Shown here: positions 1 through 63,084 of the stretch, piece by piece
Layout: every line of letters begins with the position of its first letter
How positions within the stretch are numbered: position 1 is the first letter of the stretch
Source of the DNA: Octopus bimaculoides
Taxonomy: Eukaryota
Reading direction: 5' to 3'
DNA length: 64,000 bases
NCBI RefSeq assembly: GCF_001194135.2
Contig: NC_068982.1
Span: forward strand, 169,084,257-169,148,256
The notes under the pieces: model-generated
Databases searched by the model: none
Seen by the model: the letters and a program-made list of their open reading frames with translations, nothing else
Told to the model about the DNA's origin: nothing
Made by a program: the position numbers and the translations under genes

Positions 1-232
1 GGAGAGGCCTTTGTTACCAACAAAGGTATATATATGTACATACCAGTGGCGTGCAGTCTCAGTAATGCAAAGTAAGCAGCGCATGTCCAGTAATTTCTAT
101 TGGGAAATTAGATAAAATATTTACTTTGTTTCAAAGAAAATCTATCCAGTTGTCTTCGAAATATTCTGTCTCCCTTCCCCTCATTTAGTGACTAGTAAGT
201 TATGCGATGAGGAGACCGCATGTAAACACTTC

Positions 233-507
233 CTATCTGTGTCTGTTAGTTTGTCCTTCCTCCCTCTCTCTTAGTGATCTGTTAAAAGATATACTAAGAC
301 CGATAGCATATATCTTTTGTACCCCCTTCCTCTCTCTATCGACAAATATATCGGGTAGGCAATGCTATGAAACAAGCTGCATGTCAACTATATCTATCTC
401 TGTTAGTTTGTCCTTCCTCTCTCTCTCTCTCTCTCTTAGTGACCTGTTAAAAGATATGCTAAGACAGCGCATTTGAAATATTTTGTACCCCCTTCCTCTC
501 TCTATCA
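233..507 (+). repeat. about 110-bp imperfect direct duplication in the hAT subterminal region
   Basis: ctgttagtttgtccttcct...ttagtga.ctgttaaaagatat.ctaagac...ttttgtacccccttcctctctctatc occurs at about 233-340 and 393-507. Confidence 0.8.
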
Positions 508-534
508 GTGACTTGGTAATTTAATCAGGCTGGC

Positions 535-687
535 CATCATCATCATCATCATCGTTTAACGTCTGCTTTCCATGCTAGCATGGGTTGGACGATTTGACTG
601 AGGACTGGTGAGACCGGATGGCAACACCAGGCTCCAATCTAAATTTGGCAGAGTTTCTACAGCTGGATGCCCTTCCTAATGCCAACC
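535..687 (+). mobile_element. SINE-like repeat family A (nested in the hAT)
   Basis: (CAT)n-gtttaacgtc.g.tttccatgct.gcatgggttggacg...gctggatgcccttcctaatgccaacc; at least 8 copies in the window. Confidence 0.75.
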
Positions 688-992
688 GAGGCCCCCTCTC
701 TCTCTCTTTGTTAGTGTAGAATTGTTGCTGGTTCCACTTATTGACCGGAACTGGATCAGTTCTTTAGAACTGCTATAATTAGCCATAATTCTTGGACAAG
801 CCTGGCGTGTAAGTTTGAATTTTTTATCCAAAACATCTGTTTGCACTATTATATTTTTGGAGTGTTCTGAAAACAAAAATATTATATATATTATATTTCT
901 TATTTCAGAAGTAGCTAATTAATCTTAAATTAGTTTAATTAACGTTTTTTTTTAATTCACTTACAATTTACGCGTGCTTTACTTTTTTCGAA

Positions 993-1490
993 ATGAGTGA
1001 AATGTGTGTTATAAACGATATTTTAAGAAATAGTTTTTCGAAAAGAGACTTCCATGGAAAACAATTAATTATAAATGATGGGAGACCAACACCGAATTTA
1101 CCTAATTTGCGAACTTACAAGAAATTCACGAGACAATTTCAGGTTAATTTGTATGAAAAGAAAAAATGGTTAGCTGGAAGTGCTACACTTAATAAATTAT
1201 TCTGTTGGCCTTGTTTACTTTTTTGCTTAGTAAAGAATGTTTGGAATGATAAAGGCTATGATGATTTAAATAATTTACATATGGCTATGCTAAAGCACGA
1301 GCGTTCTCAAAGCATATAAAATCTTTGATAGATCTTAAAATATTCGGGAATGTTCGCATAAACTTACAATTAGATGCATGTAATAATCAAAGCATACAAC
1401 ATCATAATGAGAAAGTTAGACGAAACAGATCTATTCTGCAACGATTGATTGATGTTGTTATTTTTTTAGGCCTCCAGGAATTATCGTTTC
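993..1490 (+). pseudogene. hAT transposase N-terminal fragment (TTF-type zinc finger / ZMYM1-like)
   Basis: KWLAGSATLNKLFCWPCLLF...W...GYDDL...KHERS, then a frameshift into HNEKVRRNRSILQRLIDVVIFLGLQELSFR; no catalytic core follows. Confidence 0.8.
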
Positions 1491-3135
1491 GGCAAATTTT
1501 GTAAATAGGGGCAGGGTAATGTTGAATATTTAAGAAAATTTGCAGAGTGTAAGATGTTTGTAAGCAATTCCAGAACAACAAAAGCCTTACTTTCACTACA
1601 AAATTTCAATTTCGTTTGTGTCTAAATATTTTCATTCTTTCAAACCATGGCAAACCCCCGACAAAAACTCGTGTTGCATCTCTTTTGTCAGTGAATAAGT
1701 CTCGGTTTCAAAGCAACGAAAATATTGACAATGAAATGAGATTTAAATGTTGCAGTGAAACAACCATTTCTCTTTGTGTGTGTTTGTGTCTGACTGTGTG
1801 ATGATGTGAATGTTCCGAGGCCTCTCCCCCCTCCGTTCGCGAGCGCGCATTTTTTCTTCATATTCGTTCGCAGCAAGTTATTTTACACGTATTTGAATAT
1901 TTTATTTTTTTTATTTCCCACCGGGTCAAACGCTTTAGTTTGACCTTGATTAGAGTTTGTTATAATGTAAATTTTGACCATCTTACATCAGTATTGTTTG
2001 GCAGGAGAAATGGTTCAACTTCTTCGTCAAACCTAACCTACATAGGTTTTCCTTTCTGTGCTGCTGGGTGTAGTCTATTTACAGCCGTAATTGTCTTGTT
2101 TCAATCTCAGAGATGTTGACTGCCACAGCAGTTTTGGAGGCTTTTTAAAATGTTGAATTTTCACTGTCTTTCATTGTGTGTATTCATGTATATGCGTGTA
2201 TTGTCAATGTGTGTGCGTGAGACGTAGTCTTTTAATATACGAAGTTCAGTAAGTCTCAGAACAGTCTGCTTGAGTATCAATAATTTTCCCGGAATTGACA
2301 AGTAGCATGATAAAGCACCTGACTTGTCTTCTAGAGCGTAACGATCTTAAAGCATGGCCATATAATGTAACTAAATGTATTCACTTAATTAAATCATTTC
2401 AAATTGATTCGGCTCAACCAATAGGTATAGGGGCTAATGCAGAATCGCACCCCTTTGAAAAACGAATTTTGTGAAAAATTTTTTTCGGATTCCTACCTTT
2501 AACAGAGATTCCGAATATGCAAAAATATTAACAGAATCCAATTTCATCTTCATTACATTTCACTTATGATTTTTAGACTTTTTAAGGGAGAGGGAGGATG
2601 AGAAAGTACTGACGTTTCGAAGAGAGAAAAATACAATCAATACACTTATTTCAGGCTCATCTCTACAGAGCCATTTTTTATTCCCTGCTTATTCTAGGAC
2701 ATACGGGGGTGATTGCATATTCAGAATCTCCCATATATAAATTGTAGGAATACGAAAATTTTTTTACTGAAAAATTGCCAGGGGGGGGGGGAAATCATTG
2801 CATGCCCAACTCCGGAAGTCACAGCATGCCACTGGTACATACATATGTGTGTGTGTATGTTTGTGTCTCCTTGTCTTTACATAGTGTGATAGTTGTAAAA
2901 TGAGCGTCAGTTATACAAACTGTAATCTATTTCCAATATTCTTCAAAAACATGTTTGGCCAAGGAGAAAAGGACATTGGCCAAGGACATTGATGGAAAAC
3001 AGGTGTAGATTAGCAGTAGGAAGAGCCTCTGGCTGTAGAAAACCTGCTTCAATAAACTCCAACCAACCAATGGAAAGGTGGATGTTAAAATGATATGTAC
3101 AAAAAATTAATTATGTTGAGAATAATCTGCTTCTT

Positions 3136-3316
3136 CATCATTTAACATCCATTTTCTAGACTGGCATGGGTTGGATGAGTTCATAGGAGCTGGCTAGCCA
3201 GAGGACTGCACCAAGCTCCGCTATCTATTTTAGCACGGTTTTTATGGCTGAATGCTCTTCCTGATGCCAACCACTTTACAGTGTTGACTGGGTACTTTTG
3301 ATGTGGCACCAGCACT
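3136..3316 (+). mobile_element. SINE-like family A copy
   Basis: same consensus as 535-687. Confidence 0.7.
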
Positions 3317-4929
3317 TTGTTCAACCTTTCAATACTGAGGACATCTAGTCCGTCTATTGAGCATGCTGTACTTGTGTAGAGACCATACCAGTATTTCACA
3401 AGTGACCACACCCAAATGAAAGCTACACATAACTAATGGTAAGATTGAGTATTGACTTTAAAGTTCCTCTTTGATCTCATATAAGAACATTTTTACTGCT
3501 GTTCATGAATATTCCTCATTGCTATTCTCTGAAATATGACATCCACAACTGTCATCAGATGCTTAAACTTCATCTCATGAAAATTTATCTAACTAGTCAA
3601 GGTGTGGCATCTTATCACACATTATCATCCAACAAGAAACATTCAAATTGAAAGAGAATGGCATTGTCTGGGAAGTTCATATCCATACTGTCAAGTCATG
3701 TTGCATTCTTAAAAGTGAATGGGAATCTCATCCACCAGAGGCTCTTCACTCTGTTAGATTCAAGTAATAAACATATCCTGGAACTAATATTGTGCCTTGG
3801 ACAACCACAAAGTCCAATCAAAGAAGGCAGGTACCATATGGTGTCATACTTTAGTTGCTATTTAATACTTCTTTTGTTCCAGTCTTCACATTTGAAATTA
3901 AACTTGATTCTTTTTTTATTGACAAAATGGCAAAAGATTACAAGAGCTAAATTCCAAGATGCACCAAATCAAATTAGAAAAAAAAAATTGTATTGCTTTT
4001 CCATGAAAGAAATTAAGAAAGACAACAATAGACAGACACAAACTCAATTTTAATGATGCACAAATAGAAATAATTAACCATACTAGTTTTATTTACAGAA
4101 AGGCTTTCTGAGTCTTCAGCTAAGTATAGGTAATAGTGATTAATTATTTACAAGATCTATTAGACATTTATAGGTGTGTAGACAGATAACAAAAAAATTA
4201 CTTCATCCAGGTTTGTTGATAAGCTACAACTACATAAAGCTCTTTTTATTGTTGAAAAATATCAGGTTATCTAAGACGTTTATGTTGATAGTAATATTGA
4301 CATCTTCAATAACTTGCCAAACAACTTCAAACCCAATTGTAAGATATTAGACATGTACAAAAATTAAAATGATTTTATGCTTGCCAAAATCTCTGCAAGT
4401 GATTCACATTGTGGTATAAAAATATTCCTTACAGTAACTTGTTCTGAAGTTCTTTAATAAAGCTGATATTAACCAATATTACTTGTTTTCTAAAAAAACC
4501 CCGAAAATCTGTGATTTATTGATTCAAATTACTAAAATTAATTTGATGAGAATGTATTGAAACTTGAGTAAGCTAATTAAAAATTGCAAACAATTCAATA
4601 ATTCAAAAACTGAAAGCTTAGTTATCAATGAAAAGTATCTAAAACTGCTTCAAGCTCTTCATTGTTTTGGATTTCTAATTTTTGAAATTATTCGAATATT
4701 AAGGTTAAATTTTATTAATAGTTCAGTTTTAAAACCCCTTAATAAATGTTTGTACAACATTCCAAATGGTATTAAACGTCTTGGGAAGAGGTGTTGATAA
4801 AAGAAAATGTAAGTCTCACTATATTCTAAAAATAAACGAAAATATCTCTTTGGGTATGTATTTGGAAACTTTGAAAACTTCATGACTTTTAGTGTCACAA
4901 AAGACTGCACTGTCTTGATATCAAGCATT

Positions 4930-4971
4930 TTAAAACTCCAGTGATCCAATAATGCGTTGCACAATTGCTCC
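4930..4971 (-). CDS. probable ferlin alternative terminal exon B (distal)
   Basis: tttctcattttatttttctcaacacag|GGA GCA ATT GTG CAA CGC ATT ATT GGA TCA CTG GAG TTT TAA = GAIVQRIIGSLEF*; phase 0; aligns ungapped to exon A. Confidence 0.65.
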   Translation of the reverse strand, partial: GAIVQRIIGSLEF

Positions 4972-6864
4972 CTGTGTTGAGAAAAATAAAATGAGAAAGG
5001 AAGTTAATGTAATGATAATACAGTTAGATAAATTCATCATGCACACACACATTTTCCCCTCTTTTTGATGTATAAAAACATGTCAGAAATCTTGAGATTA
5101 TCATCATCATCATCATTATTAAGATTATTATTATTATCATTGTGATTTTTAAGTATCCAAAAAAAATTATCAATTATTCAAAGAATAAAGCATAGCCTGT
5201 TGACATCTTTCCTTTTAACTTTGAGATTCCATTTGCATTCTCTTAATTGTCATTTCAGCTAATCTCAATTTTTTGTTGATCAATTTATAGAATTACAAGA
5301 TTTATTATAAAGTTATTTACTAAAAGATAAGAGATTTTAGCAATACAACATTTAAAACAGTAAGAGGAATGAGATAAAATGAAATATACACATACACTTA
5401 AATGACATGCAGTTTTAATAATAAAAACAAACAAATAAAATAAAGCAGCAAATATAAAGCTTTAAGCAAAAAAAGTAAAAAAAAAAGAAAAAGAAAAATC
5501 ATTCAAAAGGGTGTCTTTACTATTTTTTACAATCGCTCTAAGGTTTAAAAAATAACGAAAGATTCAAACATTTGCAAATGAATAATTTTAATTAGGATTA
5601 CTTATACCCAGAGATTTCCACCAGTCAAGAATATATCTGAGTATATAATCTAAAACCTGTCCATCCTAAAGCAATAAATAAATAACAGCAAATCTAAACT
5701 AATTTTAAGAAATCTACCTTGTATATTTTATCAATGGAAATGCTATTGGATGCATGTATATTATAATAGCTCTTAGTAGGCAGATTAGGTCTTTTTGTCC
5801 AATTTTGATAGAAAAGGTAATTAATGACCTCAGAAATCAAAACCTCAAATTCCATTAGCACTAGGCCTTCTTGTCACTAGTGGTTTTGACTCACTACACT
5901 GATAAATCAGCACTTTAGCTAGTAACTGTTTCACAGTCAACAACACATACATCATAATTGCATTGCAACATTAAAACTGGAGGAGATACATGGGATGGAG
6001 AATCACTGAAGAAGTCGCAGGTGTGTCATGAAAGATTTCCAGACAATGGATATATAAAATAAGAAGAATAATAAACAAGTTTTGCTTACATAATGAGTTG
6101 GATTTTAAAATCTTTTATTGTTTTAGAAAAAAATTTTGTATATCACTAACTTGAACTATATGGTTCAGTTTAATACATTTTCTTAAAACAGTGTTTGTAA
6201 GTTTAGCACATTTTGATGTGGTGGATTTTAATGAAAACTTTTTATTTTCTAGATTTATCAGTAAGCCTGAGTAAACAGGAAAACTAAAAGCAAAGACCAT
6301 GCTTGTATTGAAGATATAGCTATGAATAAGAGGAATTTGATAAGATCTATAGTAATTCATATTAAGTGAAGAATCTAGACAAGTTTTTCATGAATTCTAA
6401 CAGACCAGAGAAAGTAAAAATCTGTAGAAATGAATTGCTTTCTTCATTTCTTGTGAGAATCTGATGGAATTACATCAATGAAGAAGGCAATTTCTGTATA
6501 AGATGTAAATTTCTTTACATTAACACAATGCTTCAGAGTTTTAGGTGATAGAGAAAATTGGAATTTGTGACATTCATGCTAATCTCAAAATTTCAGCAAG
6601 AAAATAAAATATAGCATCACAAAACTGAAGGTGTTCTCAAATGAGAAATCAAAACTATGGCTATTAATTGTATGTAGCTATAAAGTGTTACATAATTGTT
6701 TAATGGAACCTGAGTGGTACAAGAATCTGTATAATCTTTATGTCTCCTAGATTTGTAAAATCCAAGTTGTTTAATATAATTTAAAAAAAATTTTGGAGAT
6801 TTAAACAGTGAGCATATTGCTGGTTTAATACTGGGGTATTAGCAAAAGACGTGCACATGCATTT

Positions 6865-6906
<42 letters not shown>

Positions 6907-6930
6907 ATATTAGGGAAAAAATCCAAAATT

Positions 6931-7705
6931 NNNNNNNNNNNNNNNNNNNNNNNNNNNNNNNNNNNNNNNNNNNNNNNNNNNNNNNNNNNNNNNNNNNNNN
7001 NNNNNNNNNNNNNNNNNNNNNNNNNNNNNNNNNNNNNNNNNNNNNNNNNNNNNNNNNNNNNNNNNNNNNNNNNNNNNNNNNNNNNNNNNNNNNNNNNNNN
7101 NNNNNNNNNNNNNNNNNNNNNNNNNNNNNNNNNNNNNNNNNNNNNNNNNNNNNNNNNNNNNNNNNNNNNNNNNNNNNNNNNNNNNNNNNNNNNNNNNNNN
7201 NNNNNNNNNNNNNNNNNNNNNNNNNNNNNNNNNNNNNNNNNNNNNNNNNNNNNNNNNNNNNNNNNNNNNNNNNNNNNNNNNNNNNNNNNNNNNNNNNNNN
7301 NNNNNNNNNNNNNNNNNNNNNNNNNNNNNNNNNNNNNNNNNNNNNNNNNNNNNNNNNNNNNNNNNNNNNNNNNNNNNNNNNNNNNNNNNNNNNNNNNNNN
7401 NNNNNNNNNNNNNNNNNNNNNNNNNNNNNNNNNNNNNNNNNNNNNNNNNNNNNNNNNNNNNNNNNNNNNNNNNNNNNNNNNNNNNNNNNNNNNNNNNNNN
7501 NNNNNNNNNNNNNNNNNNNNNNNNNNNNNNNNNNNNNNNNNNNNNNNNNNNNNNNNNNNNNNNNNNNNNNNNNNNNNNNNNNNNNNNNNNNNNNNNNNNN
7601 NNNNNNNNNNNNNNNNNNNNNNNNNNNNNNNNNNNNNNNNNNNNNNNNNNNNNNNNNNNNNNNNNNNNNNNNNNNNNNNNNNNNNNNNNNNNNNNNNNNN
7701 NNNNN
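6931..7705. other. assembly gap (N)
   Basis: N run; other gaps at 11168-11177, 12611-12655, 17896-18052, 22553-23346, 30657-31075 and 39997-40006, most next to microsatellites. The ferlin frame closes across them, so no constitutive exon needs to be hidden there. Confidence 1.
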
Positions 7706-9564: not shown

Positions 9565-9737
9565 CTGGTGTTGCTTAAAAAGCACCCAGTACACTCTGGA
9601 AAGTGGTTGGCATTAGGAAGTGCATCCACCTGTAGAAAACAAGCCAAAACAGACTATGGAACCTGGTGCACTTCCTGGCCTTGCCACCTTCTGTCAAGCT
9701 ATCCAACCCATGCCAGCATGGAAAATGGGCATTAAAT
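9565..9737 (-). mobile_element. SINE-like family A copy
   Basis: reverse complement of the family A consensus (ccaacccatgccagcatggaaaa). Confidence 0.7.
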
Positions 9738-11370
9738 AACACATACATACACACAATAGTTTTTATACAGTACTCGAGAAATAAAAGGGTTACTTAAGTT
9801 TCATACGGTGTGCCAATTGTACATAGAGTACATTTTTTTTTGCTCACATACACAGATAGTAAGTATGTATTTCTCATCAATTTAGGGGCTTGTCCTTATT
9901 CATCCATATAAGGTAGCTCCCACAAAGATTAGAGCTTTTGCAATAAATTCATCATCAAGTAACTTTTATCAAATCCTTTGGATTCAAATATGAAACAATT
10001 TAGAAGTGAATCAGTCCTGGCTTAGTGAATTTAGAAATGTATAATTCAGTCCTAGAAATAGTAAATGAAACCTTTTAAAAACTGACTTATCTCTTAAAAT
10101 CATTTTATTTCTATAACTAGGATTATTACAACTAAGAAATGCAGTGAAAAAACCACAAAAATGTAACACCTTTTATTTTTCGATATGTTGTAGTTTATTG
10201 AAAATATCAGTTAACAAGAACAAACTTGAGTTTATACAAGTGACAACATGAGAAAAATAATGTTTCTTTTGTATACACATAACAGTTTATCAAAAACAAA
10301 ATTAATTCATGTAAAAAGTTATGTTAGAGAGTAATGAAAACTGTGACCTTCTGATTACGGAAAATATAATCTAAAGATGATGTTAGCAAATGGTTAATAT
10401 GTCTCACATAACAGAGGAAAATAACATATGTAGGTGGGGTGGGGGCACTGCATTATATGTATTGAGATTTTATTTGAACCTTAAAGTTATAGTTTATAGA
10501 TATTTAAAACCTTAAGAATATATCTAAGGTTGATTATGTAAAAAAAGAAAAAAATTCAGGTTAAATGTTTTGCACTTCGTAAAACTGTCACTGTTCTATT
10601 ATTATTATGACTAAAACTGATTTCATATTTGTTGTATGAGCAAGGATCCCTAAGAAATGGCATTGATTTCACAACCCTTGCCAAGTAATAATATCAAGCC
10701 AACTAAAATGTATGACAAAATATTTCTGCTTAATTTTTATAACATTCAAAAGGCTTTCTAAACTTAATGGAACCAAGCAAATATTCCAGTAATTGATACA
10801 TTATTTCAATCAATTAATTTCCCCCCCAACATTTGGTATTTTTTAAGGCACAAAAGTCCATTTTTTAAAATTTATTTTTATAAGCAGAAGGGAATATGAT
10901 CAGCTGACTAATATGCAAAAAGTATTTGAATATCAATATTTTGTTAATTATATTTTACTAATTTCAATTATTCCATGATTTTAATTATTGTTTATCTTGA
11001 ATTTTGACAAGAACAACATCTGAGCAACCTTGGAACAGTTAAGTCATTGCAAACTTGAAATGATTTAATGTTAATACATTAACATTTCCCAATATATTCC
11101 TTCTAAAAGGTATCACCATACTAATTCCTTATTACAAATCAATTTTCAGCAAGAACTAATCATATATNNNNNNNNNNATTCCTTAATTATTTTTTACATA
11201 AGAAAATACTATAAAAAAGCTGTTAATAATAGATGCCTCTGGGAAAAAAAATATAAGCTAATGAAAACTATTATTTTAAACATTCATTTAGGTTAGTAAT
11301 TGGCCTATGTAAAAAATAGCAAAGTGAGTAAACATATAAAATCTCATATAAAGGGAGATTTTGGCTGGTT

Positions 11371-63084
<51,714 letters not shown>

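Follow-up and report, generated by a model that had tools for sequence, protein, structure and literature searches.

Sequence analysis indicates that the ferlin gene in the window (the whole stretch of 64,000 nt of Octopus bimaculoides DNA analysed here) carries a duplicated terminal exon which is real and probably functional. Both copies are mini-exons that start in phase 0 behind one shared TM exon, and each of them has its own acceptor and its own stop. Being in phase with the TM exon and ending with a stop of their own, the two are usable only as alternatives. In the likeliest reading both would serve as alternative last exons, which we consider rather probable. The features concerned are located as follows.

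63086 to 12865, minus strand: body of a DysF-type (type I) ferlin gene, located by tblastn of the full-length ferlins P0124 and P0262 and by Pfam
14693 to 14584, minus strand: penultimate exon, 36 residues and 2 bases, donor AA/GTAAGT, read from the sequence and found by tblastn
13012 to 12865, minus strand: TM exon, (N) and 49 residues, ending in phase 0
11403 to 11371, minus strand: proximal terminal mini-exon, coding part of 10 residues and TAA, PSSM score 18.0 bits (rank 2)
7705 to 6931, no strand: assembly gap of 775 Ns which separates the two tail exons, from the listing of N runs
5058 to 4972, minus strand: 3’ splice-site region ahead of the distal exon, with the acceptor AG at 4973-4972
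4971 to 4930, minus strand: distal terminal mini-exon, coding part GAIVQRIIGSLEF and TAA, PSSM score 20.4 bits (rank 1)

Organisation of the two tail exons

The proximal exon reads ccttgcag/GAA GCA TTT TCA AGA AAG ATT GTT GGA GCT TAA and the distal exon tttctcattttatttttctcaacacag/GGA GCA ATT GTG CAA CGC ATT ATT GGA TCA CTG GAG TTT TAA, with the slash at the exon border. A previous sequence-only reading had described a strong acceptor followed by a tail ORF in phase 0 at 4971-4930 on the minus strand, and this was recovered base for base. The same holds for the TM exon, which was said to end in phase 0 at 12865 and is directly followed by a consensus donor GTAAGT at 12864-12859 (..TTC CCA/gtaagt). 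Phase, acceptor and stop fit for both mini-exons, such that either is able to complete the protein as had been proposed.

The intron between the TM exon and the proximal exon comprises 1461 nt. From the proximal stop to the distal exon we counted 6400 nt as assembled, in agreement with the 6.4 kb given before, but this includes the 775-N gap (6931-7705) and the true distance is uncertain. As the gap lies between the two exons, it is by scaffolding that the distal exon is linked to the gene. The ungapped alignment of the two tails reported by the sequence-only reading was reproduced as well. It extends over 10 residues with 3 identities and conservative pairs, resulting in a BLOSUM62 score of 17. 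Taken together the layout of an alternative last exon is present, i.e. one donor, two competent 3’ splice sites, compatible phases and two stops.

The host gene

Searching the window with full-length ferlins (tblastn) yielded ~29 collinear coding exons, all on the minus strand and running from 63086 to 12865. On an ortholog of 1959 aa they cover residues ~583-1950, and the 5’ part of the gene is located outside the window. Downstream, no ferlin exons able to own the distal exon were found by tblastn in the window. One residue of the search queries, at the 14584/13012 junction, was K where N is correct; the results are unaffected by it.

The exons between 58460 and 53836 show GWxWxxxW motifs, and the DysF-related PF06398 (Pex24p) was matched with 30.7 bits at a cutoff of 26.8. 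A C2 domain was matched in the gene by Pfam, and homologues of the upstream region carry PF08150 (FerB), PF00168 and PF06398. With a 537-aa upstream query the closest named relative was MYOF of the cuttlefish Acanthosepion pharaonis (82% identity over the FerB region), and bivalve and gastropod ferlins reached 59-64% identity. These identities point to a cephalopod gene. The extreme C-terminus, as read from the TM exon, consists of a single hydrophobic stretch of 21 residues followed by a short tail. Ferlin_C (PF16165) was matched with 109.0 bits when the distal tail was attached and with 106.6 bits for the proximal one (Pfam, cutoff 29.4). This alignment runs into the tail up to position 154 of the 154 profile positions and favours the distal version by 2.4 bits, whereby the Pfam profile is independent of the tail scoring matrix used below. 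DysF-containing ferlins are type I in the classification of Lek et al. (PMC2923515). With DysF, C2, FerB and Ferlin_C all found, the ferlin of the window is of type I.

Further duplicated exons were sought within the ferlin gene, and none were found beyond the normal similarity among C2 domains. The region 44347-31741 on the minus strand has no tblastn match over 12.6 kb, and residues ~1276-1340 of the ortholog fall here. Open segments at ~42808 (26 residues) and ~35800 (33 residues) may represent poorly conserved linker exons.

Gaps and repeats in the window

The window has a GC content of 30% and contains many microsatellites and N gaps. Seven N runs are present (6931-7705, 11168-11177, 12611-12655, 17896-18052, 22553-23346, 30657-31075 and 39997-40006), most of which border on (TA)n, (CA)n or (GA)n microsatellites. 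The run at 12611-12655 is located in the intron just past the TM exon.

An interspersed, SINE-like repeat of ~150-190 nt occurs in seven copies with 71-80% identity and in both orientations. Of these, four are in ferlin introns, a fifth lies between the tail exons and the other two are past the distal exon:

41540-41850, 43451-43628, 49662-49840 and 50833-50965: copies of the SINE-like repeat
9578-9725: copy of the SINE-like repeat
3132-3315 and 542-687: copies of the SINE-like repeat

The repeat has no tRNA or Rfam match, and the Rfam and tRNA scans of the whole window were empty. A remnant of a Mos1/mariner-type transposase is found in a ferlin intron at 39136-38975 on the minus strand (HTH_48, 50.4 bits, Pfam) with open segments down to ~38658. 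Two further intronic segments on the minus strand, 17753-16759 and 26259-25930, are frame-shifted and by eye resemble decayed Tc1/mariner transposases; they have no Pfam match. On the plus strand an ORF of 108 aa (993-1319) with a ...LFCWPCLLF... motif looks by eye like hAT/ZMYM-type transposon-derived proteins. Neither Pfam nor an exact search of the contig collection gave a match for it.

Both tails match the tail motif of the ferlin family

Across animals, ferlin tails share the motif G[AY]xVx[KR][IM][IVL]G[AS]. A scoring matrix (log-odds PSSM) was built from the 69 unique 10-mers of 78 post-TM ferlin tails of other animals, with the window excluded; the tails were taken from the matches to the 271-aa C-terminal query described below. 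All six frames of the 64-kb window (~128,000 positions) were scanned with this matrix. The distal tail came out first with 20.4 bits and the proximal tail second with 18.0 bits, while the third-best score in the window was 10.8 bits. The exact chance to reach at least 20.4 bits is 5e-8 per position. Downstream of the TM exon 632 positions on the same strand are preceded by AG, which gives 3e-5 expected matches. Only 18 of these 632 positions have a comparable pyrimidine tract, which lowers the expectation to 9e-7. Among 200 Markov-simulated windows one attained 20.4 bits anywhere in the six frames. Judged by these scores, the homology of both predicted mini-exons to the conserved tail motif of ferlins is genuine.

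Splice sites and polyadenylation signals

The distal acceptor resembles the real acceptors of the gene. It has 14 pyrimidines at the 18 positions from -20 to -3, equal to the median of the gene’s 27 acceptors (range 11-17), and this count is reached by just 3.8% of all AGs on the strand. Its AG-free zone is 85 nt long. Zones of at least 85 nt are found for 1.35% of all AGs on the strand, and the median zone of the gene’s acceptors is 40 nt. Two branch-point-like motifs are located upstream of the distal exon, namely TTAAC with its A at -33 and CTAAC with its A at -53. The proximal acceptor, ttttcttcttcctctttttcatccttgcag, has 16 pyrimidines at the 18 positions and an AG-free zone of 46 nt.

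Hexamers of the type AATAAA/ATTAAA are found 301-494 nt past the proximal stop and 213-471 nt past the distal stop, with a strand background of 2.9 per kb. As this is merely the background density of AT-rich sequence (30% GC), the hexamers are uninformative on independent poly(A) sites.

Age of the duplication, probable selection and likely ancestral copy

On the DNA level the two tail exons are identical at 17 of 30 nt. No significant DNA similarity beyond T-rich tracts was detected in the 300-nt flanks, and a comparison of the 3.4-kb neighbourhoods of both exons revealed microsatellite matches only. The lack of flank similarity together with the 17/30 nt identity shows that the duplication is old. 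It is at the protein level only that the sequences support a common origin by tandem exon duplication.

In simulations of neutral decay an unused copy retained its AG together with at least 18 bits in no more than 1% of the runs from d = 0.3 (substitutions per site) upwards, and in less than 0.1% from d = 0.5. Survival under neutral decay is thus so rare that it argues for both copies being upheld by selection, now or recently.

The sequence-only reading had regarded the distal exon as the second tail, and in this point the polarity is probably reversed. Seven of nine residues of the distal tail are identical to GASVQAIIG of the best ortholog (P0001/P0262). Compared with 129 unique ferlin tails, the distal tail beats the proximal one in 91 cases, with a mean BLOSUM62 score of 14.5 vs 9.1. 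Two positions of the proximal tail are off consensus, with E for G at position 1 and S for V at position 4, and the tail is similar to the versions of Lymnaea and flatworms. Based on the ortholog match and the higher BLOSUM62 scores, it is more likely that the distal copy is the ancestral-looking, canonical tail and the proximal copy the derived, second one.

Alternative explanations

Rather unlikely, in our view, is that one mini-exon only is used and that the other is a silent relic of the exon duplication which was never, or is no longer, spliced. The best candidate for the used copy would then be the distal one with its canonical look; otherwise it would be the proximal one, as the first to be met. 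Such single use would be in line with the five other type I ferlin loci described below, which manage with one tail exon, and with the two off-consensus positions of the proximal tail. However, both copies retain acceptor, frame, stop and a motif match of 18-20 bits despite flanks that diverged past recognition, and it is this combination that survived neutral decay at d ≥ 0.3 in no more than 1% of the simulations.

An assembly artefact is very unlikely. In that case contig 1-6930 would be misplaced, and the distal tail exon would stem from another ferlin (a non-DysF paralogue) or from a mis-scaffolded copy. The position of the gap 6931-7705 between the exons is compatible with this, and in flatworms and leeches some non-DysF ferlins, P0081, P0117 and P0164 among them, have tails of the GA[IV]V..[IM]V type as well. 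The artefact nevertheless needs a mis-join that puts the last exon of one ferlin, correctly oriented, just past that of another. Moreover no TM-exon-like sequence was found within 2 kb above the distal exon, and the distal tail most closely resembles that of the best type I ortholog, with which it shares the above-mentioned 7 of 9 residues. The two exon regions have no DNA similarity and hence are not haplotype copies, which rules out a haplotig duplication. With tblastn the window was found to contain no second ferlin gene body.

A random short ORF which follows a random AG and by coincidence looks like the proximal tail has a practically negligible probability: the distal exon has just 13 codons and the two tails only 3 identical residues, but a chance ORF is effectively ruled out by the best score in the window against an independent family PSSM (5e-8 per position, 3e-5 expected matches overall) and by an acceptor whose pyrimidine tract is above average and which has branch-point motifs and an AG-free zone of 85 nt.

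Proposed use of the two exons

If both mini-exons are used as alternative last exons, two routes would be available. In one of them splicing from 12865 to 11403 and polyadenylation ahead of the distal exon would generate the 10-residue tail with a net charge of +1. In the other the proximal exon would be skipped, and splicing from 12865 to 4971 would yield ...VYSFP-GAIVQRIIGSLEF, a tail which is three residues longer and has a net charge of 0. The latter product would end with ...YSFPGAIVQRIIGSLEF. Apart from the luminal tail and the 3’ UTR the two products would be the same.

From this arrangement we infer that both exons would be used in vivo, that the choice would be regulated and that it could have functional consequences. 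These may concern tail-anchored insertion or targeting, luminal interactions or a regulation based on the 3’ UTR. The length and charge of the tail can affect the insertion and targeting of tail-anchored proteins. Such an effect on insertion or targeting may apply to the ferlin of the window. Ferlins belong to the tail-anchored proteins, as described for otoferlin (PMC10984619). That the choice of the tail alters trafficking is speculation.

The luminal or extracellular residues of ferlins are usually regarded as a passive stub, and to our knowledge no function has been assigned to the conserved post-anchor tail. Only tentatively we put forward that the cephalopod ferlin tail could be a functional module which is switched by a regulated choice of the last exon. 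Such a switch would have evolved independently of that between exons 47/48 of vertebrate otoferlin (OTOF), and what it would alter in the dysferlin/myoferlin-like protein is its insertion pathway, its destination membrane or an interaction in the lumen. Should both exons be used, the locus would represent a natural experiment, in which the tiny ferlin tail is under selection and worth switching. The pair would then also be a handle on the function of the tail, as it would offer two natural variants on an identical protein body. Moreover the terminal exon has a length of 42 nt. Homology-based annotation calls just one of such a pair, and models of the locus may carry either C-terminus. The tail pair may already be contained in existing isoform annotation. 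The general understanding of ferlins and of alternative last exons is unchanged by our findings.

Comparison with other ferlin loci and known systems

The ferlin loci of Lingula, Helobdella, Elysia, Limulus and Dicrocoelium show the same phase-0 intron after a ...[FILM]P codon. In these five type I loci the tail is likewise encoded by a separate last exon, which follows the pattern G/x-A-x-V-x-[KR]-I-[IV]-G-x and a stop. No convincing second tail copy was found at the five invertebrate loci within the readable 8-10 kb downstream. Each of them thus has one convincing tail exon, whereas the window has two. The single mini-exon in the five other loci indicates that the mini-exon itself is old and its duplication lineage-specific. 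Judged by the shared intron position and tail pattern, type I ferlins ancestrally had their tail on an exon of its own that starts in phase 0.

In Dicrocoelium dendriticum (L010) a tail-like ORF, GNLGNKMLGAKSDI followed by a stop, is located at 44637 on the plus strand right after an AG, 7 kb past the annotated tail exon at 37587. It has a poor pyrimidine tract, and its score of 14.6 bits is within the chance maxima. The non-DysF ferlin of Owenia fusiformis (L011, 16241 on the plus strand) has the tail GYMVKKMMHA with a stop, contiguous with the TM and with no intron. Among the ferlins examined, a separate tail mini-exon seems to be specific to the DysF type.

Protein databases were also searched with the C-terminal region. 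A 271-aa C-terminal query returned a best match of 66% identity and no cephalopod, a 99-aa C-terminal query gave no scoring candidates, and an exhaustive search of representative proteins reached 59% at best. Alternative-tail isoforms are absent from the clusters of the 10 closest matches (Lymnaea, Calicophoron, Branchiostoma and others). Five JGI metagenome sequences matched a degenerate DNA pattern of the distal tail. They were rejected as chance matches in high-GC bacterial sequence without ferlin context. A full-text literature search for the tail peptides yielded no mention, and a literature search on ferlins in cephalopods gave nothing relevant.

A switch of the last exon has been described for another ferlin. 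Exon 47 of vertebrate OTOF contains a stop; in the cochlea this exon is left out and exon 48 used instead (PMC7768390). The resulting isoforms differ in their extreme C-termini and 3’ UTRs and are tissue-specific in brain and cochlea (PMC7768390). The likeness to the window consists in a stop-containing exon of a ferlin that is, or in the window would be, either included or passed over for a downstream exon. The OTOF alternatives also replace the transmembrane segment. In the window, by contrast, both alternatives share the TM exon (13012-12865), such that a change would be limited to the tail of 10-13 residues. As the gene of the window is a DysF-type lophotrochozoan ferlin, any relation to the OTOF switch would be convergent. 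We thus see the exon 47/48 switch as an analogy and not as a system to which the locus would belong.

Alternative last exons of the skipped-terminal-exon type, which are coupled to alternative polyadenylation, have the same layout of one donor and two terminal exons with a 3’ splice site and a stop each, and their products differ in the C-terminus and the 3’ UTR. What sets the window apart from alternative last exons in general is that its two terminal exons are homologous copies and not unrelated sequences. With regard to its architecture, the locus is a fresh example of a fairly ordinary, known kind.
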